A stretch of DNA of 64,000 bases from Ruditapes philippinarum (GCF_026571515.1 NW_026859820.1:124001-188000); one strand, 5' to 3'; positions 742-58,191 are shown, counted from the stretch's first letter. Translations and numbers: made by a program. Notes: a model not told the origin generated them from the letters alone.

Positions 742-1617
742 TTATAATTTATTTATATAAAAGATGGACTTACTTCTTAGATCATCAATCTCTACCTCAA
801 CTTCTTCTGTTTCTTCAGGAATAGTTTCCATTTTAGGTCCGTGTGATGACGAAAGTCGCAAACCGGCATCAGCGATGTCTGGAGATTCAAACGCATCGTC
901 ACTATCCACGTTCCCATCACTGTCAGTATCCGTCACGTCTTCATCAAGATCTTCGGTGTTATCTTTGTCTTTATGTTTTACATTACCCGTTCTAGGCGAA
1001 TCTTCGGTTGACTTTGTTCTACCGTTTCTTAAATATTTATCCTCTCTTGTAGAATGTAATCCATTAGTTTCATCCAAAATGTTTTCCTCGGAATCATTTA
1101 ATTTATTGTCTTTATCGACTTTCTCGATTTCCTGGTTCGATTTTTCTTTCTCCTCAGAGCCATGAATAAGTTGTTTATTTCCCGACACACGGAGAACATC
1201 TACGTTCCCTTTCAGGTTGTTTTCACCGCTCCTGTACGATCTGGCAATAGCTACGTTCTCTTTAAACTTTTGTACTACTTTCATCATCAACATTCTTGTC
1301 TTAATATCCTTCAATTTCACTCGTATCTCTTCTTGATGTCTCGCATATTCTCTCTTTTTAGATCGCCGTATTTCAGTCTTAAGTTTTTTACGTGATTGGT
1401 ATAATTTCTCTTGTTCTTTATTTAAAGATCCGATCGTGAATAATTGCTCTTTAAACCAGAGGTCTAATTGGCGTCCCATTTGGCCGACGTTGTGTCTTAA
1501 ATTATGTTGCACTAACGGCTCTAGTTCACTTTTCCTCATGAATCGAAGTCGGTATAAATCTTCTGCCTTACCCTTGGTAACTTCGAAGGGAAACTTCATT
1601 TTTTTGTAAACTTTCAT
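742..1617 (-). CDS. Uncharacterized intronless protein, 291 aa; basic predicted coiled-coil N-half and acidic low-complexity C-half
   Basis: Uninterrupted 876-nt ATG-to-stop ORF in AT-rich DNA. K/E/R-rich helical stretch (EQEKLYQSRKKLKTEIRRSKKREYARHQEEIRVKLKDIK) and a D/E-rich tail. No recognisable domain. Confidence 0.7.
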   Translation of the reverse strand: MKVYKKMKFPFEVTKGKAEDLYRLRFMRKSELEPLVQHNLRHNVGQMGRQLDLWFKEQLFTIGSLNKEQEKLYQSRKKLKTEIRRSKKREYARHQEEIRVKLKDIKTRMLMMKVVQKFKENVAIARSYRSGENNLKGNVDVLRVSGNKQLIHGSEEKEKSNQEIEKVDKDNKLNDSEENILDETNGLHSTREDKYLRNGRTKSTEDSPRTGNVKHKDKDNTEDLDEDVTDTDSDGNVDSDDAFESPDIADAGLRLSSSHGPKMETIPEETEEVEVEIDDLRSKSIFYINKL

Positions 1618-12784: not shown

Positions 12785-22998
<10,214 letters not shown>

Positions 22999-23303: not shown

Positions 23304-24068
23304 TTACATGTAAACATCAGCTGGGTCGATATTTTGTTGATTTGTCTTCCGATCGATACTATCGATTGAATGATAATATCCAGAATTTGTAGACGATAGC
23401 GTCTCGGATTTGGGCTCTTCCTTTACGATTGGTTCTTGCTGTGACGTCACTTCATCTGCGTTGTAATAGACGCTGTCTCCAATCTTCGTCATTTGCATAT
23501 TTTCTGTTTTAGTCTCCTTTTCTGGAATGTTTTGATTATCTTTGATGAATACGATACTGGGTGGGGGCGGTGTTTCCGTACAATATGCGCAGAGTAACCA
23601 CAGTATAATGAACAGGACAAGTGCACAGCCTGCAGCAATTCCACCAACCATTGCGTCATGTTTTAACTCTTTCGTCAGTTCCGGTCCATAATAAGGTCCA
23701 TCTACATTGATCCCTATTTTTACAACCTGCGTTCCGTTTACCCCTGTATCTACAATGCAATAATATACCCCGAAGTCTTCATCGTCAAGCCTGGCAATGG
23801 ACAAAAGGAATCCATTGTTTCTGACAGCGATTTGGCCATCTTTAACATCTGTATCCGATCCAGTCAACCAAACGTCACTAGACGGCATTATCCAAGCTTT
23901 TACAGAATGAATGACGGCACTATGTTTATAGAATTTAGCACAGTCTAAATCTACTTTCTCAAAATATTCAACGTTCTGGTTCCATGCATCATTTTCGCCA
24001 CGCACGAGTGACAGTGGCAACTCGGGTAATGCAAGGAACAACAGGAATGAAATTTGAAACAAAACCAT
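23304..24068 (-). CDS. Single-Ig-domain type I membrane protein, paralog A (254 aa)
   Basis: Signal peptide; B-strand VDLDC (C43), C-strand KAWIMP, E-strand LSIARL, DEDFGVYYC (C104); TM AMVGGIAAGCALVLFIILWLLC; ~90-aa tail with several Tyr. Confidence 0.9.
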   Translation of the reverse strand: MVLFQISFLLFLALPELPLSLVRGENDAWNQNVEYFEKVDLDCAKFYKHSAVIHSVKAWIMPSSDVWLTGSDTDVKDGQIAVRNNGFLLSIARLDDEDFGVYYCIVDTGVNGTQVVKIGINVDGPYYGPELTKELKHDAMVGGIAAGCALVLFIILWLLCAYCTETPPPPSIVFIKDNQNIPEKETKTENMQMTKIGDSVYYNADEVTSQQEPIVKEEPKSETLSSTNSGYYHSIDSIDRKTNQQNIDPADVYM

Positions 24069-25735
24069 TTTTGTTTTTGGTTATGTCCGCTATCAGACGA
24101 ACTAAATTTTCCTCTGCCTTTTAAAGCGTACAGATGTGTGCAGGCAATGCTTTGCCGTATTCTCAACGAACGATCGTTTTTACAACGTCATGTGACGTCA
24201 CAGAATATCTATAAAGAAAACAAAAATCTTGATTAGCGAAACGTTAATGAAATTGAAATAACCATAGCTGTGATACTAGAAAGGGGGAAATTGTTTTCGA
24301 TTTTTGGAATAAATTATTGCCAACTTATACCTTTGTACAATCGATCTTGACAAAACTCTTTTATATATTTGAACCTAAGTATTCAACCAATCAACTACAA
24401 GACTATTGAAAAAAGTTAAGATATATTCCTTACTACCTTGTCAATCAGACGCTGTGGTTGCATAACCTATTTGAGCCATTTTATAATATAATTAACAATA
24501 AGAGCACCAAGACCAAAAGAAAATTTAACGTTCTTACCTTAACTTACAAGTCCTTTCTGTTAAATGAGAGTAACAGTGGTATAAGGGTAAAACATATTCT
24601 TCACCGTTATCATAGGTTCACCCGTAAAACACAGAACATGACAACAACACTGTAATGTTATCAAGATATGTACGTAAACATTAGCAAGAAGGAAGTTCTT
24701 TATAGATACCAAAATATTTGCTAAGTGTGTAAAGAACGTGAAGGTTAAATTTCAAGCGCTTCATAAAAATAATTTTGTCATTACAAAAACAGTGAACTCC
24801 GTACTACTCGGCATGAGTTTTGAAGAGGTCTTTGTAGTTTCTCTTTGTATAATGGTTGTTTTATAAAATTCATAAACTCTGGAACAGAACAGAGCATAAT
24901 TATCTTTTAAATTATTAGCTTAAATTACATATCAAGCAACACACGCATGAGTATACATAAAAACAGTGGTTTTTCCCCTTAAATTAACACATAACATTAT
25001 TTTATATAATACTTCTACATGCAGTACCATATTAGGTATTTATTAAGAGGAAAACTAACAATTATCACGAGAGATAGAAAAAAACGACACATTTTAATTA
25101 GGGCTTGTTTAAACTGAATACCGTACCTTTTCAACTTTACCAGATTATTTCAGGCGCGAGTGGGAACCTGTCGGAGAGATATCAAAAATAAAAATAAAAA
25201 TAATTAAATATTAAATAAATAAATAAATCGTAAAGATAAAAAACCACGCAATCGAGATAAAGAAAGATAATAATAAATGAATGTTCTTTACTTTTGAACA
25301 CGGTATGTATCCATGCATCCATAAATGGATACTTCAAGGAAGATAAACTTGTCAGCTAGCTCGTCTAAGCTAGGCTATGTCAATGTAGCTACTTATCTCG
25401 CTTTGGTATCTCAAGTAAAAGTTTGATTTAAAATATGATTTAAACAATAAAGATTAGATTTTTTTTCACGAACGGTGAAAAGCGATGGGTCGAAATCTTT
25501 GGTGATTTTCACCATGACCCAGATGCTTTTTTTAAAAAACCATAGCATTTTTATCACATAGATGGGATTGAAAATTGGCACATTTAGTGACAGGTCAAAG
25601 TAGAAACAATTTACTAGTCTTCCAGTCTGTTATTATCACCATGACCTGGCAGTATCATCGAACTCTGGAGGACTGGATACATACCGTGTTGAAATGCCGT
25701 TACAGATTTCATATTTAACAACCTTTGAATTGAAA

Positions 25736-25972
25736 TGAGCCGCGCCATGACAAAACCAACATAATGGATTTGCGACCAGCATGGATCCAGACCAGCCTGC
25801 GCATCCGCGCAGTCTGATCAGGATCCATGCTGTTCGCTTAAAAACTCTATAACAAGTAGAGAAACTGATAGCGAACATCATGGATCCTGATCAGACTGTG
25901 CGGATGCGCAGGCTGGTCTGGATCCATGCTGGTCGCAAACCAATTATGTTGATTTTGTCGTGACGCGGCTCA
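25736..25972. mobile_element. Palindromic MITE, copy 4
   Basis: TGAGCC...GGCTCA, flanked aa/aa. Confidence 0.9.
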
Positions 25973-27667
25973 AATCATCAATAAAACTGTTCATGTATTC
26001 CACGAAAGGGACCGTCATCTAGGCCTTCAGATTATATTTTATGCTTAATTTTTACACCTTTGACTGGAAGGTTTGATATTGGAAAAACGTCAATGACCAT
26101 CTATGACATATATAATAACCATTTAAAATTCACATAACATGTTATTAAATCCTATTTTAACTGGATTTCAAAGATAAATACATAGAAGTTTCTTATTTAT
26201 TCTTCTTGTTTTATATTTTGGATAACCTTTATTGTATTTAAATGAGGTCTGATGAAAGCGTTTCGGCCGATTATTTATATTGTAAATATTTGATAAGCAC
26301 CTTTAAAGTAAAGAATAGTATACAATGTGAAGGCTTCGTTTATACTAAGATATTTATGATAGTAAATCTTTTCTAGATAAACATAATAAAAACCCATGAT
26401 GACTCTGTTATGATAATAAAACACGAACTTTACATGTTTGTACACAATTTACATGTACAGTGTACATATTCAGTGTACATGATTTAAATTATATTTGTAC
26501 ATAACTTTCAATTTTTTATCAATCTAATGTGCCCGACAACCTTATTACTTTATACACTCTCTTAAAATTGATTATAAAGCAACAACAACAACAACATAAA
26601 AAACATCGTCGGATACCCACGGCCAATCCATTAACATTTATCTGATAACATGTTATGTTACATGTTAATCATTCGTGGGTATCCGATGATGAAAACACCG
26701 TTTTTATCAATTGAAGTCGCGTCTTTGAAAGGGTTGGGTATGACCGGTTCACAGGTCCAGTTGTTCGACCGTATGGCGTCCCACCCTTTCTCCCTTTGTT
26801 AACCTCTTGGATATTTCTTCTTTCTTCTTCTGATTTTAATCATTTCCAAAACCGTGCCCTTATAAAATGTGTTCCCATACTCCCTATAAAACAAGCGGCA
26901 GATCTATGCATGCTTGTACGAGAAACGCGGTGGAATATTTTTAATTACAGTTGTAAATGTCGGTAAAACCTGACTACTTTATCAATCCGCATTTGAAGTT
27001 ATATTCACGACAATGCATACATTTGAATGATAAATTATTTAAATACCTTCAAAATAATGTTTACACATGATCACTTTATGTTATCTTTATCTTAACTGTT
27101 GAAATACCGTATTATACTATTTAAACTGCTCTCATTTGGAATGTTCAGTAATAGCTAGTTCGCTTTAAAGTGAACTGGTCTATAAAGGAAGGTCTGTTAT
27201 ACCATGATTAATTATGTTTATTGTGTAAAATATCAAGGGGACAACAAAACAGGAAGATGGTGTATGTACGTGTAAGATACATGATCCGGTATGACATATC
27301 CAAATATAGTCGATAATAATTTGTTCTAAAGGAAAATATTATTATTCAATATTCAATATTTATAAATGTTGTAAAACACTTAGAAACTATCAGAATTTTG
27401 TTTTCAATGAGCATTTTATATGAATATTGTTTTTATCAATAACTTTATGGAAAATGGGCAAACTGTAGACCAATTCACTTTAAACAATAATTTAATATCT
27501 TTGAAAGCTCGTACCACCTGAAAGGCCATTTTTATGGCATATTATAGCAGTTTTAATCGTAAGTCTACATGTCAGGAGACAAGACTAGCCCCCCCCCCCC
27601 CTATTCCCCTATTCACAACAAAAGGACCAGGACCAATGTCAAACGATCTTGATTTTATTTTAATTGC

Positions 27668-29312
27668 TTTTTATGCCCCCATTTTGAAAAAAAGGGGGTA
27701 TATTGCTTTGCACTTGTCGGTCCGTCGGTCTGTCGGTCCGTCGGTCCGTCGGTCCGTAGACCAAATGGTTTCCGAGTGATAACTAAAGAACCCTTAGGCC
27801 TAGGAACTTCAAACTTGGTATGGTGATTGGTCATGACCAGTAGATGACCCCTATTGATTTTGGGGTCAAGGGGTCAAAGGTCAAGGTCACATTGACCTTG
27901 AAAGCAAAAACGGTTTCCGATCAATAACTAAAGAACCTTAAGGCCTAGGAACTTCAAACTTGGTATGGTGATTGGTCATGACCAGTAGATGACCCCTATT
28001 GATTTTGGGGTCAAGGGGTCAAAGGTCAAGGTCACATTGACCTTGAAAGCAAAAACGGTTTTCCGATCAATAACTAAAGAACCTTAAGGCCTAGGAACTT
28101 CAAACTTGGTATGGTGATTGGTCATGATCAGTAGATGCCCCTATTGATTTTGGAGTCAAGGGGTCAAAGGTCAAGGTCACATTGACCTTGAAAGCAAAAA
28201 CAGTTTTCCGATCAATAACTAAAGAACCTTAAGGCCTAGGAACTTCAAACTTGGTATGGTGATTAGTCATGACCAGTAGATGACCCCTATTGATTTTGGG
28301 GGTCAAGGGGTCAAAGGTCAAGGTCACATTGACCTTAAAAGCAAAAACGGTTTCCGATCAATAACTAAAGAACCTTAAGGCCTAGCAACTTTAAACTTGG
28401 TATGGTGATTGGTCATGATCAGTAGATGACCCCTATTGATTTTGGGGTCAAGGGGTCAAAGGTCAAGGTCACATTGACATTGTAGGTAAAAACGGTTTCC
28501 GATCAATACCTAAAGAACCTTAAGGCTTAGGAACATTAAACTTGGTATTGTGATTGGTCATGATCAGTAGATGACCCCTATTGATTTTGGGGTCAAGGGG
28601 TCAAAGGTCAAGGTCACATTGACCTTGTAGGTAAAAACGGTTTCTGATCAATAACTCAAGAACGCTTAGGCCTAGGAACTTCAAACTTGGTATGGTGATT
28701 TGTCATGACCAGCAGATTACTCCTATTGATTTTGGGATCAAGGGGTCAAAGGTCAAGGTCACAATGACCTTGTAAGTAAAAACGGTTTCTGATCAATAAC
28801 TAAAGAACGCTTCGGCCTAGAAACTTCAAACTTGGCATGGTGATTGGTCATGACCAGCAGATGACCCCTTTTGATTTTGGGGTCAAAGGTCAAGGTCACA
28901 TTGACCTTGTATGTTAAAACGGTTTCCGATCAATAATAAGAGAACCCTTAGGCCTAAGAACTTCAAACTTGGCATGCTGATTGGTCATGACCAGCAGATG
29001 ACCCCTATTGATTTTGGGGTCAAAGGTCAAGGTCACATTGACCTTGTAGGTTAAAAAGGTTTCTGATCAATTTACTAAAAACGCCTAGGCCTAGGAACTT
29101 CAAACTTTGTATGATGATTGGTCGTGACCAGCAGATGACCCCTATTGAGTTTTGGGTCAAGGGGTCAAAGGTCAAGGTCATGACCAGTAGATACTTTATA
29201 ACCCTTATTAATTGTTTGATCACTGGGTCAGACATCATGCATAATAACCTTATCACATGACTAATTGGCTGCTGATGGGGGGCATACATGTTTTACAAAC
29301 ATATCTTGTTTT
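27668..29312 (+). mobile_element. Helentron/HINE-like element carrying a ~145-bp satellite array
   Basis: 5' TTTTATGCCCCC, a (GTCG/GTCC)n microsatellite, ~10 tandem 137-146-bp units containing GGTCAAAGGTCAAGGTCAC (27771-29180), then 3' GGGGGGCATA (inverse of the 5' subterminal repeat), short hairpin ATGTTT-TAC-AAACAT and CTTGTTTT. Confidence 0.85.
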
Positions 29313-31033
29313 AAACTAACATTGATCATATTGGGCTAAAATTATATGGTACTTAAACATTATGTCAAATTTCTGATTTGTAAAGAAGCAAAACTTAAAC
29401 TGATGAATAAGAATAGAAAATATAAGACTGTTCCGATAAAAGAATCAATTTTAGGACCAAATAAACCATATCCTTAATACTAGGTCAATTTATAACTGGG
29501 CATTTCTTTTTGCGTTTGTCACGATAAACTTTAAAATGTTTTTAAATTGTAAAGCAAGTGTTCATATGTTTATAGTATAGAAATAGTCAGTTACTAATTA
29601 TGTTCATGTTATCATAGATACAGAATGCACATTTATGATAAAAGTATCTTGATTTGAAACAAACGAACGAATGAGCGAAAATCGTTTGAAATAAATTTGT
29701 GAATTTATTTGTATATTTACGGTAGTATTAATAAATACAAACATGTTTATAAATGAAATCAAAGTTATTAGATAAGGGAAGCTGATATAATTCAAATACA
29801 CCATTCAATTAAAAAAAGGAGTACATGTAAGGGGTACAGATTTAATTTCGAAATTTGGATAAATACCAAAGGCTCTGAAAATGCAGAGGTTATAGGAAGT
29901 GTCCAAGTTGATGATTTAAAGCTGAGAAGGTAAGTAAATTTAATATTGATATGTCAATAGCATTTTTTAAAGTGGTGTACTTGAGTGCCACATTTCACTA
30001 TTAATTCTTAATATTTAAATGCCTTCGCGACCGATTTTAGGCGTATCTTGAATAATATTCCCCGTACTATTTCGAAGATCGAATCCAGTCCGGGACGTTG
30101 ATCGCATGTATCCGAAAGGTCGATAATTCTACCGATGTGTTCGTTTGAAAAGGACACTTAGACTATTTTGTGCATTTCAGCAAAAATCTAAAAATGGCAC
30201 ACATGCCTACCTTGAATTTCAACATGTAGCTAATTTGGGTACCACTCTTTTAAAGGCACTCCACTGAGGTCTAAAATCTCAAAAACATGAAACTTGAATA
30301 TCACATGCACATCTATAGATCATTAGGGGCGCTTAAAACAAACAGATACCCAAAAGATGACAGAGAAAATGCATCTCAAAAATATATTGAAAATCGTATT
30401 TTTGTCCAATTTAACGCTTTTCAATTTGCATCATTTTTACAATTAGAAGATCTACAATTTTGCACATATACGTTGTTGGTTTAGATAAACATCAAATAGA
30501 ATATTAGCCTTGAAAATAAAGTCTAGTCCCATCAAGTAACAAGAACCTGGGATATACGATAACTTATCGTATGTCCCAGCAAGAACGCAGTTGGGTCCCT
30601 TTAAATTGAGTTAAGGGTGTCTGCCATGTTTTAACCATATCATAAACTAGTTAGTCTTAGAACGGACTTAAATAATTTATAAAATTTTGAAAAATGTTAT
30701 GTACAATGGCGTAAGCCTTCTTACAAGTTTCCTCACCCCCTCATTTATGGGAATGTAAGCCACGTTTACGTAGATAGCCCGAGTCTGAGTTTCTAAATTT
30801 ATCAAACTGTGTCCCTGAACCTTATTTTCAGTTAAGTAAATTTTATAAATTGCCCTCAAAAGTGGCTGAATGTGACTGAATTTTAAGAGTATGATTCTTT
30901 CATTGAAATCAGTTCGATTTTCGGACAGATCTAATTCGGATAACCAAGTTTGAGTTAGGTTTAATAAAACGGTCTTTAAAAGTCTGTGATCGAAAAGTAC
31001 ACATTTTAACATTTTGTTTTTGTTATATTTCAG

Positions 31034-31648
31034 ATGAAGTGGCTAACGTTTGCCTGTTTCCTGATTGTTTTACTCGGCACTATTGCTGAGGATTTCCATT
31101 TAGAGTATTACTCAACTGTGACACTGGAATGCGATGACACTAAATATAACTTTACAAATTCTGGTCAAATCAACAAGCGCTACTGGGGGTCCCCAAAAAG
31201 GACCTTTTTTCCCCCCTCTCAGGTAGCGGCCTTTTTTAAAATTGAAACCCAAAATTTTTTACCTTGATGTAAAAAAAAATAAGCGATGTGACTTTGGACT
31301 TTTTCGTATCTTAGTGGTTCTGGAAAAATCGGGACAAATTATGCAGGGTGTAAAACCATGGTCCTTTTTTGAGATCTGTTAAAGAAGTACAGGCACAATG
31401 CTAGATTGGTAAATCGCGGCGGGTTTTCCCTTTTCTAGTAGGGGCCCCGGAAGCTTTTTATATTTTTTGGCAATTGGGGTATCAAGGAAAAAAGTAAAAA
31501 GGAACAAGGGCCGTAGACGAGCTGTTTAAAGGATTTGAGGATATGATTCAGAGCTTTTAACTTTGGGTTTAGAAAACGTAAAAATTAAAGGAAAAGCAAG
31601 GGGGGAGCAAAAATTGTTGGGAAATTTTATGATGAAAAGAAAATGTAG
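31034..31648 (+). pseudogene. Single-Ig membrane protein, paralog B; frameshifted in this sequence (pseudogene or assembly error)
   Basis: tttcag|ATG, signal peptide MKWLTFACFLIVLLGTIA, then EYYSTVTLEC...KRYW. Broken remnants follow: KISD..DFG, KKYRHNA..IG..AAG, AVDEL.KG..GYDS. Probable stop at 31646-31648; candidate 5'UTR donor at 29930. Confidence 0.7.
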
Positions 31649-32220
31649 CAGCTCCAGTGTTCAAGCGTTTTAACTGTTGTGTCTGAAACATTACGTTAGC
31701 ATCACAAGAAGCCAATGGTTCTAATTGTGCATTTCAAAGTTCAATGATATTCTATGATAGAAAACAGAAAACAGTGTATACAGAATATTTACTTACAAAA
31801 TGTACTCGTATTTTCATAATTGTTTTATAGCAGTGGAATTATATTAGAACAAACTATTTAAGCGTTTAAATTACCGGCATTATTGTGCGTAAAAAATAGT
31901 GACAGGTTCTTCTTGGCATAAACAAACCTAAGTTATATTTAAAACTTTCTTGGAAACAAATAAAAAGAGAACAATATAATTATTTACTTAGTATGTGGTT
32001 TTTATTACTAAGATGATCTTGAATCCAACAGTGATTCTTTATTTACTAAGCATAAAACATTGCATGTTTTCTATTCTATAATAAGACTAAATGTAAATTT
32101 CAAATATACTTGTACCATGTCCTTGTAGAACGAGTTTGTTCGTTTGGCTATTTAAGAAATAGAAAATAAGACACCGTATTTCAGTTGCTTTCTCTCGCAA
32201 AAAATAAAAAGTTAGAAAAA

Positions 32221-32340
32221 TTCTGGTCAAATCTACAAGCGCTACTGGCTGGTGCCCAACGGAGACCTTATTTCAGCCTCTCAAGGTAGCGGCCATTTTG
32301 AAATTGTACCTTGACTGTAAACAAAATAAGCGACGATGAG
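32221..32340 (+). pseudogene. Duplicated internal fragment of the paralog B Ig exon
   Basis: Reads SGQIYKRYWLVPNGDLISASQGSGHFEIV, then after a deletion TLTVNKISDD. Nucleotide match to 31159-31290. Confidence 0.75.
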
Positions 32341-33188
32341 CAGAAGAAGGGAAACAATCTGAAGGTCTGTTGAAGCATCACGAGTTGTCTCTCTTCGATA
32401 TATATAAAAGCAGTAGAAACTACGAAATAGTTCGTATATTTCCGTCATGTCTTATGATTGTTTTAAACAGTGTCGATTATCACTTTAGCATAATTATTAA
32501 AATAATTAAAAATCTTGTAACGTTACCAAATCAAACTATAACAACGTTTTCTGCAGCTTATAATGGACAACTACTAAAATAGAGATGCGTAGTGGTCATC
32601 TTTATAAACATTCTAACTGACAAAGATATAAAACCTTAAATATCTCCTCTAAAATTCCCTTTTATAATTAACATTCTGAATAAAGGTAAAAACATTATAG
32701 TTTGGCATCAATTATACCAGCTACGGTGTTCCCTTGATCAGTACAGGAAAAATAACGACGTGGATGCTAAACATAAGGGAGATAACTGCAGCGATGCCGA
32801 ATAATGAAGGGGAGGTCACTGCACGGATGGAAGGTCACTGCGTGCGTGGATGCCAAAGAATAACGGGGAGTTTTACTTTTAATGGATTTATTATCCTGAT
32901 TTATAAATGATTTTTTAAAACTCCTATAATTGTATTTCTTTAAAAAATCATTAGAATATAAATCTGCAAATGGCTAAATTATCATATTTAGTTTTAGTTA
33001 TAAAGTTCATAAGGCCTTATAAGAAAACGGACACCTTTACTTTTTTGTAACACAAAAACAGTTATTTCCGTTATTCAAACTGCTATTCTTATCGTTTGCT
33101 ATGTACAGATTACAAACTACACTGTTTATGATTTTTAAAATATCTTAAATCTATATATTTTTCTCTGTAGCAAGAACTGACCGGAAAT

Positions 33189-34608
33189 TTATAGATGTGC
33201 AGAGCTAATAGTAACACTTTCTCCATGAGTCGGACTTCCGGTTTTGTTCACTTTTGCATACATTTCCTCCGCGTTCGGCTGTCGCGGTTCTGAGTGATGA
33301 ACGCTACGGTTGCTTATTGCATACTCATGCTCCGCGTGACGAGATTTCATGTTGTGGGTGTAATAATCAAGATTTGACAGCGTGTCTTCATTTTTGGACT
33401 TCTTTTTACGACATCTGCAAGCAACACATACAATTATTACAATAATCACAGCCGCGCCTGCGCTGATGCAGCCAATCAAAAGGTTTCTTTGAAACGTTTC
33501 AAGTTGTCTTTTATATAACGGCCCATCCTCGTTTAAAGCCACCCGGATCACACTTGTGGTGTAAAAGATATTCTCCCATAACAATACACAGTGATATACA
33601 CCAAAATCTGGGTCATCGATACTGTCAATACGTAGGTTAAATATGTACGGATCTGGTGCCTCGATATGATATCGCTCACTTCCGGGAAAGTTGTCAGCTA
33701 AAACGGAAGTATTCGGAAGAATCCAGTATTTCTTGAAGGGAATAGTTATGCCAGGGTAGGTCAGGTTATGAAGTGTAAAATTACACGGTAGTGAGGCGTT
33801 TGTGAAGTATTCTGCTTCGTAACTTTCCCGTGCACCTGCAGCCTCGTATGAAAATACGGACACAACTGTCAAGAGAACGTAAATAGTCCGGCTAAAGATG
33901 AAGGTCCTCAAGACCAGCTGAAAAAGCAATATAATATCTACGCATTATCAAGGAATGTAACCCCCATAACATATGTCTGTAAACATCGAGACAAAGAGAG
34001 AGAAAAAATTATGAAAATTCGTCTTAAAAGAAAGTTTTTGATATAAAAGCAAAAAAAATAAAAAAATAAAAGAATGAAACATAATTTTTGTGCAGGCAAT
34101 GAAAACAGCTTTCTGTAAACCGGTTACTAGATGCCTCTTCCATTTTATGTTTATTTAAATTCGCATAGAACTATTTACATATTCATATTGCAAGCTATTC
34201 TTAATACGTACACTATGAACGCAAAAATCGTAATGCTGTAACCGTGCCTTCTTCGCAAATTAACAATTTCATGTATATGTTAAGAAAATTGTACTAATTA
34301 TATCAATTTCCGGTAAAAAAAAAGAAATATTTAGTGAGCAGAGCACCTTAAAACAGAACCTGAGAGTGTACATATACCATTTAAGGTTTTAAAATTTTTA
34401 TGCTTATATCTGGCCGTTCCAACTTATTAATTTGAGAAATAAGGCTGTGTGATATTTTTTCCGACTAAAAACCGATTGTAATGATTCAATAAAGAAAACA
34501 ATAAGTAAAAAAATCTTTAAATTTAAAAGGAAAATTCTTTATTGCTATAATACTAAACACAATATTAATAAAGAAAAAGTCAAATAGCTAGTTTACCTCG
34601 TTTTCCAT
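33189..34608 (-). CDS. Single-Ig-domain type I membrane protein, paralog C (~246 aa)
   Basis: Predicted exon 1 34608-34597 (ATG GAA AAC GAG|gtaaa) and exon 2 33917-33189 after tttttcag. Motifs EYFTNASLPC, KKYWILPN, DDPDFGVYHC, LNEDGP; TM LLIGCISAGAAVIIVIIVCVAC. Confidence 0.88.
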
Positions 34609-35979
34609 AATTCTATCCGAAATATCTCGACTGTCCGACTATTGTATCAGTAAAGTATGACTTCATATGGTAGATCTGTGGTTACAATGTAAATGTCCCA
34701 CCTATTTACACTCTTGTGTATTTAATGGAAAGATACAAGACTTTCACTCTAAACTGTTTGCTTAAAAATATTTAAACAATAGCTTTATATACATATTTGA
34801 TAATAAACACTTGAAAAATATACAGTAAATATGTGAAATTCTTTTATGTTCGCAACAAAAATCAGAATAACTAATTTCAAAAGAATTTTTGGTTCTGATA
34901 CGAAATTTGTACCCTTTGTGAATTCGAATCTTCTTCTTGTTTGTTTATTTTATTTAACTTGAATGACAATGTGTCAAAACACGTACGGTAAATGACGAAC
35001 CTTACGCAAAGTACATTTTAAAGTACATGTAAACTGGTCGTTCTCTCGTTTAATAACTGGTCTTTTACGTATACTTTAAAGTATAAACTTGAATCAAAAG
35101 TACTAAAACGTTATTTAAGGATTACACATTCTTTAATTATATTGATAATAATAATTATAGGTTTTGACATATAAATATCATCTTGACTTCCAAGAAATCT
35201 GCAGAGGGTTAGACAGAAATTTGGTCAGAATTAAGAATTAAATTGAAAATCGATTTTTGTGACTCTTGAGTGAAGGGAGCTGAAAGGTTTTTTGAACAAC
35301 AGAAATTTTGATTCTTGAAAAACGGGATGAGGAAATTATCTGAAAATTTACACACAAGTTATTGGCACGGACCTACATCAAATTGTATACAAATCTCGGG
35401 AAAATATTTCTAGTTCCGTCATGTCCTTAAACCTCAATTGAGTCTTTTTGAAATGCGACTTAAAGCGAAAATGTGACAGTAGAAAGTTAATGCATATATA
35501 TTTTATATTTTATATATTTAAGATATAATTATGCTGAAATGTGATGAGCCCGAAGATTCATCAGCGCTATTCTTGCATAATAAAAACGTATAATAAAGAC
35601 CCGTGCCCGTGTGATATCATCAGTTAATGCATGTTTTCTTCTCTATAAATGTATACCTGCATGTACTTTTTTATGCAAGACTTTAATTAATAAATTATAT
35701 GAATAAAAATGAAATCGGATCAATTGAACAATAAGAAATGACTAAATGATATATAATGCATATATTTTAATCAACATATAAAAGCAGCAATGAATGTTGA
35801 ATTTCAAGTACATGATTATAAATCAATATGTAAAAATAAATTTGACGAACAGTTTCAAAACATAATTGATCAAAAGAGGAAAATAGACGAGTCTTTTGTA
35901 AAGGACTGTGTAGTGATGAAATAAACTTTCAGGGAAATAAATTACAGGGATAATAAAAGGTCTGATTCTTGTTTTTATA

Positions 35980-37050
35980 CTAAAATTTCACAGCATCGTA
36001 ATGTCCTTTTCCGGGATATCTGGTGTCGTCCTCGAACACATATTTCTGGTCTGGATCAAAGGAAGGACTTTTGTGACATTGATCATTTCCCGCATCATAC
36101 GCGTGATTTATAAACACGAGTCTCTGCGCAGCGTTCTCGGCCTTTAGGTCGTCTTGTTCGTCGAATGAATCATTGAGGGAATGTAAAAGAGGTGGTGGCG
36201 GCGGAGGAGGCGGGACAATGACATTATTACAATCTCCATCGTCATCAGAGCACCTCGGTACTTCCGGTTGCGATATTTCAGTTGTCCCGGAAACTGGTTC
36301 AAATATTTGTATCGGTCTTCCTCCATCTTCACTGTCATCCTCTTCTTTCCTTATACTAACAGCTATTTCACCGTCACCGACCACAGTTGCGCCATCGTCA
36401 TCATAACCTTTGACAGCTTTATCTAACTCATATATTGCTTCATTTTCTTTTGTAGAATCCGTATTAGCTTTACTATTTGAATCACTTGAACTATCATCGT
36501 TTTTGTTAGACTTGGTTTTTACTTTTGCCTTTTCCTTTTTGACATCATTTTTTGTATTAACTTCGCTATATCTACACCAGTATAAGAGGCAGAAGAGACT
36601 TAGCAATGCTGCTGTTACTCCCCCAGCAATTAGACCTATTATGGCACTCTTCCGGTACTGGTCCAACAAGTCTTTATATAATGCTCCATTAACATTCAGT
36701 CCAATTTTTAGCGTATGGACTAAGTAGATGTAGTTGTCCCAAAGAATCACACAATAGTACCATCCAAAATCTTCTTCGTCTACGTTAGTAATTGTAAGAT
36801 TGAAATCCGGAGACTCCCCGACAAAGTATCTGCTGTTATTGCCGGATTCATGCCACCATTGAATTACCGATCCATTTGGTAAAATCCAATATTTTTTAAA
36901 GGTTGTATACGGAAGTGCTAAAAGTTTGTCGTCACAAGTGAGCGTAAAATTGGAGAAGTATTCCGCCTTGAATTCAACTTCAACAGACGATACGAAACGC
37001 AGCACGATGGATGATAAAATCAGGGCAACTAAATTTTGCAATGGAGGCAT
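35980..37050 (-). CDS. Single-Ig-domain type I membrane protein, paralog D (356 aa)
   Basis: Acceptor tttcatttcag then TGAC-ATG (37050); candidate UTR donor cag|gtaag near 37688. Motifs EYFSNFTLTC, KKYWILPNG, DEEDFGWYYC, LNVNGA; TM AIIGLIAGGVTAALLSLFCLLYWC; ~197-aa acidic tail with poly-Pro. Confidence 0.9.
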   Translation of the reverse strand: MPPLQNLVALILSSIVLRFVSSVEVEFKAEYFSNFTLTCDDKLLALPYTTFKKYWILPNGSVIQWWHESGNNSRYFVGESPDFNLTITNVDEEDFGWYYCVILWDNYIYLVHTLKIGLNVNGALYKDLLDQYRKSAIIGLIAGGVTAALLSLFCLLYWCRYSEVNTKNDVKKEKAKVKTKSNKNDDSSSDSNSKANTDSTKENEAIYELDKAVKGYDDDGATVVGDGEIAVSIRKEEDDSEDGGRPIQIFEPVSGTTEISQPEVPRCSDDDGDCNNVIVPPPPPPPPLLHSLNDSFDEQDDLKAENAAQRLVFINHAYDAGNDQCHKSPSFDPDQKYVFEDDTRYPGKGHYDAVKF

Positions 37051-38355
37051 GTCACTGAAATGAAAATATATTTCAGTCAACTACAAGAAATATGAGGAAG
37101 GAATCAAAATAGAATAAAACGTTATATCGTAATGAAGCTCTAAAGGTTAATTTTAAGCGTATTATAGATGCGTTTTCGTATTTTCTTTTTTATTCGGTCT
37201 CGCAAGACAGGAAGGCTCGCCAGAAATCCACAGACTAGCCTCTGTTTTTTTTTTATCTAAGTCTGACACATATTAATGCCTTTCAAGAAAATGTATGATT
37301 CCGATTATTTCAATAGAGTTTTTTTTTTCTTTTTAAGAATGTACGGTATATACCGTATCATTTACATATGATAGTTACGAAAAGACTGGACAGTGTAAGT
37401 AAATAAAATGTTTTTTTTTAATAAATGCGGCGTCAAATCGTAAATTTTATACTTAAATTTGATTAATCTGAATTGGTGTTTTCCCAAATAGTATCATAAG
37501 ACAATCTTACATCGCTCAAACTTTGTCTATTTAGCCAAAAATGCATGTAAGATGTTATAAATTCAAACAGCCTTTTTTCTTTAAATACAATGCATTGTAA
37601 ATCGTTCGATGTTTATCTTTATATAATATACGAAGGTTCTCCCGGAGTCATATTACCTGATTTTAAAATGAAAACAAAAATGGCTTACCTGACAAATAAA
37701 TGGCCGAATAAAGATTCTTAAAATCTCATTAAATTTTTATGTTTTCGTACAAAGGTTTTATCACAAATATGAGAAATTCTCAATCGCTTAAGAACAAAGT
37801 CATCACAGTTTATATTAATATAATACCTCTATAAAAATGTTACCTTTCGCAAATACGGATTTGTTTAAACAAGTTACTTGTACCCAGAGTGCATGTAAAT
37901 TTACTCTCTTGTTTTCTTAAGTTAGAACAAAGTTTTTACAATTTTAACAACCTACACGAGGGTTTGTAAACAAATAAATCGATCAATGTAACAAATTATG
38001 TTCCCTCTTCGACACTTATGCCATTTTTTTCTTCGTTTTTTTCCCCGAAATTCCTAGTTATACAAAAATATTGTATGTCAATGATTTATTATAGGAATGA
38101 AATATCTATGTACCTTTTTTACCCTAGTATAAATCATAAAACAAAGATTATAAAAGCAGTTTACATGATAATTACATGAGTTATTGAAACCAAAACGTTC
38201 GATTTTATTTATTCTTATGCATGTATTGTTTCACATTTTAAAACTCCTTTTAGAATCTGTGTACTATATAAGCATTTTTTTTAAAGTGTATTATCAGTCA
38301 ATTACATAACACCGTAAATGTAACGCGTTTGAATGATATATTGAAAATAAGATAA

Positions 38356-38357
<2 letters not shown>

Positions 38358-38420
<63 letters not shown>

Positions 38421-38530
38421 TAAAATCATTATCTCGTCTCATCTTGGTCATCATCATCATCATCATAAGCACCATCATCATCGCTTCATATTCATCGTAA
38501 TCATCATCATCACAAGCATCACAATCATCG
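38358..38530. repeat. (AAT)n and (CAT)n microsatellites between divergent paralogs D and E
   Basis: Direct reading. Confidence 0.95.
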
Positions 38531-39073
38531 TCATTATACTAGTTATCAAAATTATAATTAAAACAAAGTATACAATTGAATAATGGAGCAGTATTTATTT
38601 ATTTACGAAGAAAATTTCATTTTTCTGATTTCACTAGTTTGGAATCTTTAAACACCGTTAAAATGATTCATTCACCGTTCTCGTTATAAATAAATAGCGC
38701 GATTATTGTTGATTTTGACCTGTTAATTAAAACAATGCAACAATAACTAAAAAACAAAACTTTTCTTAATTAATAGCTAAAGAGGCCTTGCAAATGTTAT
38801 GAAACAATAAATAAAACAAAACAAGACATTAAAACGCGGTATAATGTGACAGGCGTTTTATCATAGACGTCGAATAGTGTTAAATATTTTGAAATCCTTG
38901 ACGATATAAAGTATAATCAGCACAATGTAATATTCACTTGTCATGGAATAATTTATTCAAAAACACGACCCAAGCAAAACAATAAATTTAGTGATTCGCT
39001 CCGTTAAATTCAACGCGTATTTGTTCATTTTTGTTTTTTTACAAATTTCACTTGTTCAACGAAAAAGGATGTT

Positions 39074-40620
39074 ATGGAGGTATGTCTGATTTTTGTTTTC
39101 ATTACATAATTTACATAAAGACATGTATGTATTTTCTTATCCTAGGTGCCCTTCAAAATTGCATTTTTTGCACGTTTTTAAACATGGAGATGAATTACAT
39201 TTTTGTATATAACTTGTGAAGGAAGCTACACGCTTAAAGAAACACTTTTGAATCCGTTCCTGGAATCAAACAGTAATTAGCAATAAGTGTAGTTTCTTAC
39301 TCAACAAGGCAACAGCTGAAGGCCATTGACGGGGTTTAAACCAGTGCGGCAATAGATCCTTAGATAAATAGTCCTAATACTTAACGACCATGTCACCAAC
39401 CTTTATACATTATTTCATTAGTAATGTTTCGCTATTTTCAGGTATATCAGTAGAAGACAATCATTGTGTACTTTTATTGTGATGTCAGATGAATTATGCA
39501 AAATATATTATATCTACGATAATTTAAACTTGTATGACTTAATACAAAAGATATTTTTATATACTTATAATTGAAATATTGAGAAAGATTGATGAAATAA
39601 AATACGTATTTTTATTTTTACGTATTTTCACTGTAAAAAATTACTTTTTACTGCAGTGAAACATATTTTCCATTTTGTCACTGGTGTCTTGCGGACTACT
39701 TTTTCCCAAATTCAGACAAAATAGAAAATTTAAAAAAGGATTCTTCCATAGCATACGATTAAAAAAGAAAAAGTATATAATAAACAGAAAGTTCAAGTTT
39801 TTTTCTATTAAAACAGGATTTATTTTCATCTTGTGGTATGAACATATTCTATTTCACCCGTGGCTAGTGCCACCCATGTAATATTTATTTTCATACCACT
39901 CGATGAAAATAAACATGTATTTATAAAAGAACATGAATATCCCTTTATACTCATTAATACTTAAAGCACATTTAAACACATTAAATTTTACTTTGTAATA
40001 CACATCTCTTTCAGACCGTACAGACATATTTGATAGCATCACTATATTTTTGCTGTGACGTATACAGTATGGACATTAGCCAGAAATACTTCTCTGACGT
40101 TTCAATCAGCTGTCATGAAAGTTCGTTTCGGAATGTCTCTGACAATAAGGAAGAAAACAAGTTTGCTGCAAAAAGTATATGGTTGTTACCAAATGGTGAT
40201 ATTGTTCGGACAGGTCAACATTCGGATAAACAGACAAATGTCTATTCGTCAATTATAAATGAAACATCTGTATTACATGTAAACCGAATTGATGACATAG
40301 ACTTTGGAGTGTATTGGTGTGTTCAGATATTGAACGACTCGAGTGTTGTGGCAAATAAACACACAATAAACATAGACGGGCCTCCGATGCACGAGTTTTA
40401 TGAACAGCAGCGGAGGAACGCGATCGTTGGTGCAATATCTGCCGGTGCTCTGTTAGGAATCATATTAATTACATATATTGTATGGCATTTTCAATGTAGT
40501 GAAAAGATGAGAAGAAAACGTAGACTAACTGATGACTTAGCTAAAGGAATTAACAGATATAGCACACAAATCTACGACAATGTGGGGATGGAACTTTACG
40601 TTAAGAGAACCGACAAATAG
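39074..40620 (+). CDS. Single-Ig-domain type I membrane protein, paralog E (~203 aa)
   Basis: Predicted exon 1 39074-39079 (ATG GAG|gtatgt; tentative) and exon 2 40015-40620 after ctctttcag. Motifs KYFSDVSISC, IWLLPNG, DDIDFGVYWC, INIDGP; TM AIVGAISAGALLGIILITYIVW; tail with IYDNV. Confidence 0.85.
39225..39395 (-). mobile_element. Degraded CORE-type SINE
   Basis: GAATCCGTTCCTGGAA...AGCAAT..GTGTA.TTTCTT is the reverse complement of the core at 62750-62800. Confidence 0.6.
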
Positions 40621-50400: not shown

Positions 50401-53400
50401 AGCAATCTTTTATTAGCATTTATAATGTTTCAATTACACACTGTTTGGTAGTATTCCAATATACCATTGCAAATACGTTGCTTACTTTTTCTTATAAATG
50501 TTTTTCACTTCTTTTTCATTATCGGCGTCTTACAAATAGTCAAGCATGTATTTGTTAACACACAAACATATTGTGGGTCTTACCCTGTTGCACGGCTTAG
50601 NNNNNNNNNNNNNNNNNNNNNNNNNNNNNNNNNNNNNNNNNNNNNNNNNNNNNNNNNNNNNNNNNNNNNNNNNNNNNNNNNNNNNNNNNNNNNNNNNNNN
50701 NNNNNNNNNNNNNNNNNNNNNNNNNNNNNNNNNNNNNNNNNNNNNNNNNNNNNNNNNNNNNNNNNNNNNNNNNNNNNNNNNNNNNNNNNNNNNNNNNNNN
50801 NNNNNNNNNNNNNNNNNTTTTTTTAACATCTTAACAGAATTTTTACTTAAATGAGACTCACTGTAGATATGATTTTTTATTCTTTTGGAAATGGTTTGAA
50901 AACAAACTTTATTGCTAAAGACAGATGCCCAATTAAAAAAATAATGTTTTTGATTGTCAGTTCACAGGGCGGATCAAGACGTAAGACAGTGTCTGATCAC
51001 AAAGTGTTTGTGACTAAACACTTTAATAGGAATATTTAAATTAGTGCAGTCTACAATGGACACATTTTCCATTAGTATTTCAAAGATCATTAAATTATAG
51101 AAATGCATTAATTGGATATTCGTTTAATATGTTGCTCGAAAATAAAACGTTGATAAAGTTTTAAGCGATTTACCATAAATATCTATGTGATGAATAGAAT
51201 ATTTTGTTCTAGAACATTTTATCATCTGTTATATAAATATATGTAATATCGGATTATTATGTAGCACACAAGCGCCAACAACATCCATGTATAATCCTTT
51301 CGTGGTTCGTTGTTATTATGTAATGCTAGATATGTTCAACGTAATTATTCATTGTATAACAGACCTTTCATTTTATATAGACCAATTCACTTTAATGTTT
51401 TCATTTTGATTTTAAAGGGGAAGCAGTAAATGAGGCTGTCAGATGTCCGAACGATATACTAGGAACTTATTGGTACTATAATCATACAACTTGCACCGAG
51501 AGTTATTGGGACGTATGCTCAGTGACGTCACAGATGACGTTTAATTATACGATGTGCTCAGAAAAGCAGTTTTTCTCCGGTAAAAAAATAAATATAAAAA
51601 AAATCTATGATTTCGTGTTGCTTTTAGACTTAATTAATCTATGTCTGTGTGCTTTTTGTGCTGTTAATGCATCGGTTTTGTTTATATTTGAACGGGAAAC
51701 GTTTGTGCAATTTCATACTTTAAGATGAACATTTTCACGACGAAAAATTAACGATTATTCAACTTCGAAATCATGACCATATAAGCATCTGTATTACATC
51801 TGAAAGAAACTGTGTATCAGATAGGATAATATTTTGTTTTATTTCTTTTTAAAGCATTGATTTAATTTTACATAGGTAATGATGCCATTCAAAAAACTAT
51901 ATTGACATACTTTCTAGTTACCACAGGTTTCGTTTCCAGTGATAATCAACTTCACTTAAAACACATAATTTCTTTTGTTCAGATACGTCAACAGTGAATT
52001 AATGTATATCATCACATTTGATTTCAAACGTCAAATTTTATTTGAACTTTATATGACCTTTCAGCGGGAGGTGTTGTTCGTTGTCTGTACAACGTTGAAG
52101 ATAATGACGACACAGTGACGTATATATATAATGAAGATTCGACTGTTGATAACAGCGCCACCTATCAGTATTCATGCATGGTAAATACGAAATTCAGAAC
52201 ATTATAAATCTTACAATTCCATATATGTTATAACTAATTGACAATTTGTATTTGAAAGGACCCTTTTGGAAAGTGTTTGCTTTTTCCGTTGAAATCTTCC
52301 TTTCGTTGAATCTTACCTTCTGTTCGTGCTATATTCTCTGTTCGGTTATCTGCAGATAAGCTTTCAAATCTGGTTGCTCTGGTTGCACATTATACAATTT
52401 TTCTATGATAGGCTTTTTATGTACATAAAATGTCACTATTCATAAAACACAGTTATATTTTTATATTAAGCTAGGCTTTCTCTTCCGACAGTTGAAAGTC
52501 GTAAAACTTGAACCACTTAACCTAACCTCTTCTGGTAAAAATCTCACCAGAGACACAGGAAACAGCTATCCAATTACCGTTCGAAACGTCAATGGTTCTA
52601 AGTACTGTGAACTGATTTTGACATGCAAAATGGTGCACGTGATGTCCTGCATTAATGGTTAAGTCGGGAAGTCAACATGTGACCTTACTAATGTTGATAT
52701 GGGTCATAGTTAATAACTTTAATTCAAATTCATTTGTTTTCTTTATCTACAGATAGTGAAGAAGGACAGCAGCGACGGACTTGTGTACGTCACACAGTAT
52801 CCAAGAGACTGTCTTAGTAACCAGACATCTACATATGTCGTAAGCTCTGGACATTCAAACGTCCTCTCTGCCAATGGTAAAAATTCATTTTTACATTTAC
52901 TTCACTTACATAAAATTATTTAAATTGTATTGAATTAATTCAAAGTGATAAAATGAAGAACAGTTCAGAAGGAATGGAGCAATAGGAATAGGCAGGTGCA
53001 TGTTCAACTGTCAGTAACTACCAGTAGACATTTTCTCTTATACACATTATGAGCACAGAATAGCACCTTAGGCCCTAAACCACAATTTAAGCTGGAAAGT
53101 CGCCATATGATCATACAATGTTGATGCAACGTAAATCCCAATCAAATAAACAACACAAAAAAAATTCATACTATCGCATATGACATATGCAAGCTGTTTT
53201 AAAATTACCCTGATTCTTTATTTCTTCTGCTTAGATTAAACTCTTGGTGATATTTTCTGTGATCTGTATATGTTAAAGTCTTCCTGTGATATTGTCATTT
53301 TGTACGGTTTTATGTATTGTGATATGTTATAATCTTTACACAAAGACCATTTTCTCATGGGGTGTTTTGTTTTATATATATTTACAGTAACCTGTGGTAA

Positions 53401-56850: not shown

Positions 56851-58191
56851 AAATACCCTGCAATTAAACTTTCACCACATACTGTAGGGAAACGCCGACA
56901 CAAGCGCATTGGTATCAAGAAAGTCGACGGCCCTGCAGTACCTCTTCCCCCTGTCAAAATAAAATCAAGATATCGTAGAAACTTTGCCTCAAAATCCTTA
57001 ATCACCCCAAGAGATATCCGACCACCTACAAGAAAACAGTCAGATGTAGGTAATAAACAACCTGATCAGCAACCTGATGATAATCGCGATAATGCACCAA
57101 TTGTCGACACTGCACCACCTGATTTACAATTAGCTCTCGCACGAGAAGACACATTTACAGGACAATCTAGATGTAGCACAGCATTTGAAGATAAAATCGA
57201 ATTCACTCTTCAAAAAGAAAAACCAAACCTTTCAATAAAGAGCATAAAACGCCCATCAAAGAGTAGACAGTCTAGTATAATACAAAATAGCGCCAGGAAA
57301 CTAAATTCAAGGCAAAGCATTAAGAGTCGAAATGGAAAGAAAGAACCAAACAGTGCAAGGTCTTCACAGAAGAATATTGGCTTGACAGTTAAGTCGCTCC
57401 AAAGCGATAAGAATAGCTACGTTAAACATGCTAAAGCTGTTTATAAAGACAGAAATGTGATATACAGAAAGAAAATTAAACTAAAAGGAAAAATTAAGAA
57501 GAAAAAATCAATAAAATCGGCAACAAGCATAAAGCTTGATAAGATAACAAAAGAAGACATTATTGGAAAGCCAAAGGAAATTTCTGAAGAAAAAACTGTA
57601 AAAGATATTCATGTTTGTCCGGAATGTACAATAGAAGATATTACAGATAAAGTACCCGATAAAATTCAGAATGATGAAAGTGAGAAGCCAATTGTAGAAA
57701 TTAAAGAAGCATTTATTGAAAAACCTGAAGAACCTCCTACACCTGTAGACGTGTTACCGGTAACTAGTCCAAAGTCAGCTGATGAAAATTTCTTTATGTG
57801 TTCAAATGATGAGGACAACGAGTATGCTGAATTCATGGAAAAAAGAAAGAAAGAACAGGAAATGATAGAAAGGGCAGAAAAACAAAAGTATTTAAATTTT
57901 TCAATGAACTTAGTTAAAAGTATTCCAAAAGTTTCAAAGAAAAGTAAGGTAAATAAATCTTCCGATAAAAATCCAATAACATCGTTGATGCAAAATGTGG
58001 AGTCGTTTGCTCGATTTAGTGTTCTCCGTAAAAAGTTTTCATTGAAAAGCAAAAATGACGTTTCGAAGGAGAGAAAAGAAGCGGTGATAGAACAGAAAGT
58101 ATTAACACAAGTTTACTTCAACTATAATTTAAAATCCAAATCTAGACTACAACTTCGACGCCAACGCACAAGACCGTCTGTTGTTTTTTAA
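56851..58191 (+). CDS. Large coding exon (446 codons) of a Lys/Arg/Ser-rich uncharacterized protein; 5' end unresolved
   Basis: The frame of track ORF 57382-58191 is stop-free back to the TAG at 56848-56850 (KYPAIKLSPHTVGKRRHKRIGIKK...). No ATG until ~57796. Confidence 0.65.
   Translation, partial: KYPAIKLSPHTVGKRRHKRIGIKKVDGPAVPLPPVKIKSRYRRNFASKSLITPRDIRPPTRKQSDVGNKQPDQQPDDNRDNAPIVDTAPPDLQLALAREDTFTGQSRCSTAFEDKIEFTLQKEKPNLSIKSIKRPSKSRQSSIIQNSARKLNSRQSIKSRNGKKEPNSARSSQKNIGLTVKSLQSDKNSYVKHAKAVYKDRNVIYRKKIKLKGKIKKKKSIKSATSIKLDKITKEDIIGKPKEISEEKTVKDIHVCPECTIEDITDKVPDKIQNDESEKPIVEIKEAFIEKPEEPPTPVDVLPVTSPKSADENFFMCSNDEDNEYAEFMEKRKKEQEMIERAEKQKYLNFSMNLVKSIPKVSKKSKVNKSSDKNPITSLMQNVESFARFSVLRKKFSLKSKNDVSKERKEAVIEQKVLTQVYFNYNLKSKSRLQLRRQRTRPSVVF

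Follow-up and report, generated by a model that had tools for sequence, protein, structure and literature searches.

In the 64,000-nucleotide window analyzed here (G000:C8307:124001-188000), from the bivalve Ruditapes philippinarum, four genes that look functional and a fifth that has decayed are packed into a compact cluster; all belong to a family of small type I membrane proteins that has no name. The four genes, which we refer to as A, C, D and E, each encode a single immunoglobulin (Ig) domain on a membrane-anchored stalk, and the decayed gene, B, lies between A and C. Judging from sequence and predicted structure, we favor, with moderate confidence, the view that A, C, D and E encode conserved molecules for adhesion or a co-receptor role and not a variable immune repertoire. 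The locus is of a fairly ordinary kind, as it encodes single-pass proteins of the Ig superfamily (IgSF), here from a conserved and unstudied spiralian family with a clear signature.

Four long open reading frames (ORFs) were found at the coordinates and on the strands that an earlier note, made from the DNA alone, had assigned to them: A at 23304-24068(-), C at 33189-33929(-), D at 35980-37080(-) and E at 40030-40620(+). Together with B at 31034-32334(+), they bear out the arrangement of four intact genes and one broken gene within ~17 kb in the orientation (-,+,-,-,+). Pairwise tblastn comparisons among A, C, D and E gave E values of 1e-9 to 1e-28, indicating that their likeness is not due to chance. 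The common signature proposed in the note was recovered in an alignment that spans the signal region, Ig domain, stalk and membrane helix and that contains 19 invariant columns (Y35, F36, C43, W59, P62, L89, D95, D98, F99, G100, Y102, C104, N121, G124, G142, I144, G147, C163 and Y201 in the numbering of A). Among these, N121 and G124 belong to the stalk and G142, I144 and G147 to the membrane helix, while one is a Cys at the cytoplasmic face and one a Tyr in the tail. The distances between the two Ig cysteines are 61, 65, 61 and 69 residues, exactly as claimed. Variation was likewise found mostly in the predicted loops: 20 of the 22 gap columns of the Ig domain fall outside the predicted strands, chiefly in the B-C loop, and mean pairwise identity is 32% in strands versus 23% in loops.

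The proteins share one layout, which starts with a signal peptide and a single Ig domain carrying D-F-G-x-Y-x-C, and continues through a G-x-N-[VI]-[DN]-G hinge into a helical stalk that runs into the membrane helix. This helix is rich in small residues (G-x-I-[AS]-[AG]-G) and is followed by the Cys at the cytoplasmic face and by a tail whose motifs are kept within each subfamily. All of the family features, i.e., D-F-G-x-Y-x-C, the G-x-N-[VI]-x-G stalk, the G-x-I-[AS]-[AG]-G membrane helix and the cytoplasmic-face Cys, are present in each of A, C, D and E.

Structure prediction and profile searches agree with the Ig fold that the earlier note had read from the B-strand Cys, the C-strand Trp and the DxGxYxC motif. 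The AlphaFold2 (AF2) model of A, built from an 18-sequence alignment, shows seven strands with a predicted local distance difference test score of 86-92 over residues 31-120, whereas the stalk and membrane span form one continuous helix (128-163) and the tail is disordered. A Foldseek search with this model returned 378 matches at E≤0.001, and all those listed are Ig domains, with NGL2/LRRC4, MuSK Ig1, LINGO-1, TIGIT and AMIGO-1 at the top (E values of 1e-5, 19-27% identity). VIA gave Z scores of 10.5-9.4 to OPCML, IgLON5, NEGR1, AMIGO-1, MuSK and NCAM2 Ig1 (root mean square deviation of 2.4-3.1 over 82-90 residues); because the top rows are tied in Z, this match demonstrates the fold, not a family. 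A family profile compared with the PDB reached E values down to 5e-11, to DIP, Dscam and antibody chains. The landmarks of the fold (C43, W59, D98, G100, Y102 and C104) are invariant in A, C, D and E and 96-100% conserved over 130 family representatives.

Conservation analysis of these 130 representatives showed that the C, W, P, G-Y-C and stalk Asn positions are kept at 94-100%. Within the clade of the window genes (82 representatives), the F of DFG reaches 95%, the stalk Asn 99%, and the stalk Gly and the first Gly of the membrane helix 100% each. DFG and the stalk Asn, part of the signature that the earlier note had matched to no named family, thus hold family-wide. The regions of the four proteins are conserved to different degrees, as shown by amino acid identity to Mercenaria (A, C and E) or to the nearest relative (D):

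Gene A, Ruditapes versus Mercenaria: Ig domain 69%, membrane helix 95%, tail 61%.
Gene C, Ruditapes versus Mercenaria: Ig domain 84%, membrane helix 81%, tail 63%.
Gene E, Ruditapes versus Mercenaria: Ig domain 57%, membrane helix 81%, tail 96%.
Gene D versus its nearest relative: Ig domain 80%, tail 43%.

Short motifs recur in the tails. Y[DE]N is found in 34 of 47 tails of the sister clade and in 23 of 79 tails of the window clade, compared to expectations of 1.8 and 4.4 from shuffled sequences. In all 47 sister-clade proteins the end is of the class I PDZ type ([ST]-x-hydrophobic), and 66 of the 79 window-clade proteins have a hydrophobic end. A regular-expression scan of A, C, D and E detected neither an immunoreceptor tyrosine-based inhibitory, switch or activation motif (ITIM, ITSM or ITAM) in the tails nor any D, E, K or R in the 21-residue membrane helix. 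The tail of E alone had no match in the PDB.

The family is small in the clam and widespread among its relatives. Searching the 1.4-Gb R. philippinarum assembly with two different profiles yielded only eight places, namely A, C, D and E as well as two further genes, F and G, each of which is present on two haplotype contigs. The clam genome thus holds only six members of the family: A, C, D, E and the two distant paralogs F and G located elsewhere. An exhaustive HMMER search over 1.84 billion representatives gave 1670 matches at E≤0.001 and 441 at 1e-10. About 130 of the best 150 matches are short single-Ig proteins aligned over Ig domain, stalk and membrane helix, and the rest are giant multi-Ig proteins. 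In a maximum-likelihood tree of 131 of the short single-Ig matches among the best 150, the clades of A, C, C+D and E received support values of 98, 99, 97 and 96, respectively, in the Shimodaira-Hasegawa-like approximate likelihood ratio test, and each clade includes rows from other species, while F and G belong to a large sister clade. On this tree, A, C, D and E represent four subfamilies that separated anciently, each with orthologs in other bivalves.

Named relatives in the clades of the window genes come from Mercenaria, Mactra and Mya; more widely, they include Potamilus, Babylonia, Gigantopelta, Nucella, Elysia, the annelid Owenia, the brachiopod Lingula and the nemertean Tubulanus. Full-length orthologs of 180-370 residues are present on contigs of 1-2.5 kb from many species. 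D matches an Owenia protein over Ig domain, stalk and membrane helix (BLASTP, 6e-17), and the proteins of Lingula, Tubulanus and gastropods agree in their hinge (G-L-N-x-x-G), membrane helix (VGGIAA), YDN motif and C-terminal end ([ST]-x-[LM]). The family thus existed, with the same architecture, before molluscs, annelids, brachiopods and nemerteans diverged. Of the earlier description of an old, lineage-specific family, the age therefore stands, but lineage-specific is too narrow given relatives in gastropods, an annelid, a brachiopod and a nemertean. The Atlas also ranks arthropod clusters of 212-216 residues beside A and F, a ranking that comes without alignment. Every named relative is annotated as uncharacterized or hypothetical, in agreement with the suggestion that the family has no name. 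Literature searches on the IgSF of bivalves and lophotrochozoans and on the RefSeq LOC numbers turned up no description of it, and a 2025 review of the invertebrate IgSF makes no mention of a single-Ig family of this type.

Gene numbers and locus tags hint at a conserved linkage of A and C: in Mercenaria, LOC123558896 (A type) and LOC123558897 (C type) are consecutive, and in Mactra an A-type gene (_010450) and a C-type gene (_010452) have nearly neighboring tags. A second cluster of two genes, from the sister subfamily, was observed on L001 (4858-5502) and L003 (3959-4606) of G000:C7114, ~9 kb apart, with allelic copies on L002 and L004 (G000:C1758). It corresponds to RefSeq LOC132736343 and LOC132736344 (215-217 residues), and its tails carry AYEN or AYDN and end in TQL.

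The genes of the window were modeled as follows; the C protein was analyzed as its RefSeq model (P0167) and the E protein as exon 2 only.

23304-24068, minus strand: gene A, complete coding sequence of 254 residues with its own ATG; signal peptide, one Ig domain, GINVDGP stalk, VGGIAAG membrane helix and 94-residue tail.
34597-34608, minus strand: coding part of gene C exon 1, ATG GAA AAC GAG followed by donor GTAAAC; located by pattern search, with one occurrence at a fitting place and strand.
33189-33917, minus strand: gene C exon 2, encoding the rest of the signal peptide, Ig domain, stalk, membrane helix, 76-residue tail and stop.
35980-37050, minus strand: gene D, coding sequence of 356 residues starting with the ATG at 37050, not at 37080.
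37425-37439, plus strand: possible gene E exon 1, a candidate only, encoding MRRQI and followed by donor GTAAAT.
40015-40620, plus strand: gene E exon 2, encoding the last 18 signal-peptide residues, Ig domain, stalk, membrane helix, 45-residue tail with YDNV, and stop.

The exact A protein is present in the public collection (P0001) on a contig of 193,667 bp, its Mercenaria ortholog LOC123558896 is 63% identical, and its tail contains YYN, YHSI and PPPP. The exact 356-residue D protein is found in NCBI/UniRef on the same contig as A, and a JGI allele of 357 residues starts identically. Its 200-residue tail harbors AIYELDKAV, a run of eight Pro, YSEV and YDAV, and ends in YDAVKF. A splice acceptor 4 nt upstream of the ATG at 37050 suggests that D has an intron in its 5′ untranslated region.

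The long ORFs of C and E have no initiator ATG before the Ig domain. For C, RefSeq LOC132758010 (P0167, 246 residues) consists of MENE plus the large exon; in agreement with this start, ATGGAAAACGAG followed by GTAAAC is found at 34608-34597(-), and the acceptor TTGCTTTTTCAG lies directly upstream of exon 2. C thus has two exons, separated by 679 bp of intron; its tail carries YAKV. For E, the reading frame opens behind the acceptor CTCTTTCAG at 40006-40014 without an ATG, so that an exon further upstream is needed, and E probably starts on a tiny exon as C does. The residues that precede MDISQ in frame can be aligned to the signal peptide of LOC123556899, its ortholog in Mercenaria. A scan of 37081-40010 for an ATG, a short ORF and a donor yielded four candidates, of which MRRQI matches that ortholog in having a basic start (MKKRC in Mercenaria) and in the total length of the signal peptide. 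If this exon is the right one, the E intron would measure ~2.6 kb, and D(-) and E(+) would be transcribed head to head, starting from a common region of <0.4 kb.

How might these proteins work as adhesion or co-receptor molecules? Extracellular binding is suggested by the N-terminal domain, which is I-set-like as in adhesion molecules: the Ig domain would bind a partner on another cell or in the matrix, homophilically or heterophilically and possibly among the paralogs themselves. Conservation of the membrane helix from clam to brachiopod suggests helix-helix packing, in which this helix, rich in small residues, would pack either against its own counterpart in a dimer or against the helix of a different membrane protein. 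YxN is the consensus for SH2 domains of the Grb2 type, Pro runs bind SH3, WW and EVH1 modules, and hydrophobic C-termini are typical PDZ ligands. Taken together, these three elements suggest regulated binding of adaptors and scaffolds. The YxN motifs of A, E and most of the wider family could, once phosphorylated, recruit an SH2 domain of the Grb2/Drk type; the Pro run of D could be read by SH3, WW or EVH1 modules, and the hydrophobic C-termini by PDZ scaffolds.

Several observations weigh against this proposal. Only A (YYN) and E (YDN) carry YxN among the window genes, while C and D do not, and none of the C-terminal ends VYM, AHL, VKF and TDK is a class I PDZ ligand. For E, the search yielded no RefSeq protein, and the proposed first exon is a candidate only. 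The Pfam Ig models score the four window proteins at 15-19.5 bits, below the cut-offs of 21.8-30; as PF00047 matches relatives at E values down to 4.5e-8 and the family profile reaches 5e-11 in the PDB, the ectodomain is a divergent I-set/V-like Ig domain and not an absent one. (Further Pfam matches of the window proteins, to Protocadherin, EphA2_TM and TMIE, were dismissed as chance hits driven by the membrane helix.) Finally, the strong conservation of the membrane helix fits a role as accessory subunit at least equally well.

As accessory subunits, the proteins would use their membrane helix and stalk to bind a transporter or channel, as basigin and embigin do with monocarboxylate transporters, neuroplastin with PMCA, Nav beta subunits with their channels and MAP17 with SGLT2; we regard this as unlikely, though far from negligible. 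The membrane helix is among the best-conserved parts, above all in A, and a VGGIAA-type motif is common to brachiopod, nemertean and gastropods. VIA aligns the Ig domain and helix (residues 28-157) with basigin of the XKR8 complex (Z 9.7), and the Atlas lists basigin and embigin clusters among its feature look-alikes (0.93-0.95), but these come without alignment. A profile of stalk, membrane helix and tail likewise matched PDZK1-interacting protein 1/MAP17 (E value 0.0024, including an AYEN match) and FXYD (0.006-0.01) in the PDB; these matches are weak and stem largely from hydrophobic composition. Moreover, the acidic membrane-helix residue is absent and there is only one Ig domain, so that the proteins are not members of the basigin family. 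The conserved Tyr motifs, the Pro run and the PDZ-type ends point rather towards signaling or scaffolding, and four or five paralogs, each with its own conserved Ig domain, suggest distinct extracellular ligands. A more speculative proposal, to which we give little weight, takes one of two forms: either the family is a spiralian-specific single-Ig system whose members, through their anciently fixed membrane helix and YxN/PDZ tail, are obligate partners of other membrane proteins, or the five clustered subfamilies constitute a heterophilic cell-recognition code, a compact counterpart in spiralians to Dpr-DIP or Beat-Side. In either form, the locus would represent a conserved recognition or accessory module without a named equivalent in model organisms.

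The earlier note had likened the cluster to immune and recognition receptor families such as CD300/TREM, NITR and Hydractinia Alr. Single-Ig genes clustered in mixed orientation with one pseudogene would fit a diversifying innate immune or allorecognition repertoire of this sort, as would the length variation in the B-C, C′-D and F-G loops and the faster evolution of the E Ig domain compared to its tail; in addition, all four allelic differences in E fall within the Ig domain. However, the whole genome contains just the six members, the paralogs fall into old subfamilies, each of which also has orthologs from other species, and Ig identity to orthologs is 57-84%, with the Ig domains of C and D, at 80-84% identity to the closest orthologs, better kept than their tails. 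Immune signaling motifs and charged membrane-helix residues are lacking in A, C, D and E, and the architecture has been the same since before molluscs, annelids and brachiopods diverged. The likeness thus did not hold up, and a repertoire of this kind is very unlikely. Even less probable, in our judgment, is that the ORFs are not independent functional genes but terminal exons of larger genes or unexpressed relics. The start-less large exons of C and E and the missing RefSeq protein of E are what this would predict, but the RefSeq models of C and D begin with a signal peptide, the first exon of C is in place with a canonical donor, full-length orthologs of similar size exist in many species, the frames are intact with strongly conserved tails, and the Pfam scan of the window proteins revealed neither a leucine-rich repeat (LRR) nor a second Ig domain. 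The RefSeq models of C and D and the same-size Mercenaria RefSeq models for A, C and E support the view that A, C, D and E stand alone as genes for single-Ig type I membrane proteins. The identities that the note had named as possible refutations, i.e., basigin/embigin, LRR-Ig proteins or terminal exons of larger genes, are accordingly not borne out by the Pfam search, the membrane-helix scan and the RefSeq models.

The decayed gene B consists of two partial and diverged copies:

31034-31195, plus strand: pseudogene B fragment 1, encoding the signal peptide, the A and B strands and KRYW of strand C, after which the frame decays.
32168-32334, plus strand: pseudogene B fragment 2, a diverged second copy from C to E strand (KRYWLVPNGDLIS ... 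NCTLTVNKISD) with a stop and a frameshift.

B is thus a genuine broken gene whose start and remnants are present as described, but it is more decayed than had been claimed. KRYWLVPNGD can be read in fragment 2 before the frameshift and stop, and direct repeats at 31188-31286 and 32251-32333 are 72-80% identical; neither the F-strand Cys nor the stalk or membrane helix is left in the two fragments. The best matches of B (E values of 3e-9 to 5e-7) are to a subfamily of short proteins of ~200 residues (P0033/P0050/P0063), which places B, by all appearances, in a fifth subfamily apart from A, C, D and E. The C-type model of Mactra antiquata, ACF0H5_010452 (P0037), contains an additional N-terminal half Ig domain of another subfamily (KPYFSDV...ITWILPSG), which looks as if a neighboring fragment had been fused to the C gene and is reminiscent of the B remnant beside C in the clam.

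Other elements were observed in the window. Gene A is flanked by two copies (22116-22359 and 25731-25977) of a ~240-bp palindromic element resembling a miniature inverted-repeat transposable element. The copies are 93-99% alike, lie 3.6 kb apart and have inverted arms of 87-108 nt each, and the short ORFs at 22310 and 25881 are read from these repeats. The ORF at 22310-22558 extends beyond the repeat, and its part at 22400-22558(+) resembles, judging by its motif, the C-terminal part of a papain-family (cathepsin L-like) protease; it may be an exon or gene fragment just downstream of gene A. Two long low-complexity ORFs rich in Lys, Glu and Asp are located outside the cluster, at 742-1617(-) (291 residues) and 57382-58191(+) (269 residues), and a run of 217 N at 50601-50817 is either an assembly gap or masked.

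That one architecture, including membrane helix and tail Tyr motif, has been kept implies a functional cell-surface module in animals whose surface receptors are for the most part poorly understood. With a signature this clear, a new family model can be defined for annotation, and four conserved paralogs in a single 17-kb locus of a farmed clam are tractable for binding screens and expression mapping. Moreover, the analysis removes the tempting immune-repertoire reading as unsupported.

Among known systems, the best structural matches to the clam ectodomain are the IgLONs (OPCML/NEGR1/IgLON5), NCAM2, MuSK Ig1, AMIGO-1, LINGO-1 and the Ig domain of NGL/LRRC4. Like the Ig domains of neural adhesion proteins, it is I-set-like with a Cys-Cys span of 61-69 residues. 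In contrast to these proteins, which have several Ig domains or LRRs before the Ig domain and, in the case of IgLONs, a glycosylphosphatidylinositol anchor, the clam proteins have a single Ig domain straight after the signal peptide. Membership in the LRR-Ig proteins (AMIGO, LINGO, NGL/LRRC4 and Kekkon) was rejected, as no Pfam LRR match was found in the window proteins, the RefSeq models are short and the Ig domain starts ~10 residues after the signal peptide. Basigin, embigin and neuroplastin resemble the family in that they are small type I membrane proteins of the Ig-bearing kind whose membrane helix is strongly conserved. Members of the basigin family have two or three Ig domains and a membrane helix that contains a conserved Glu; membership was rejected based on the single Ig domain, gene models of 183-356 residues and the uncharged helix of the clam proteins, and no basigin match stood out when the family profile was compared with the PDB.

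MAP17 is an analogue of tail and helix only, with a single-pass small-residue helix, an AYEN tail and a C-terminal PDZ ligand, and syndecans combine a conserved dimerizing membrane helix with conserved Tyr residues and a PDZ end. Both differ from the clam proteins in having no Ig domain, and the MAP17 match is weak and composition-prone, so that the likeness is an analogy of design and not a demonstrated homology. Membership in paired or diversified immune receptors (CD300/TREM, NITR or KIR-like) was rejected based on the absence of ITIM, ITSM, ITAM or a charged helix and of a lineage-specific expansion. Unlike receptors of the CD28 and TREM/CD300/NITR types, the clam family also has no stalk Cys for covalent dimers; its gene number is small and stable, and its sequence relationship to them exists only at the level of the Ig fold. 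Nevertheless, CD28-type and TREM/CD300/NITR-type single-V receptors have the same overall plan of signal peptide, one Ig domain, stalk, membrane helix and short tail with Tyr motifs, and CD28 also uses a YxN motif (YMNM).

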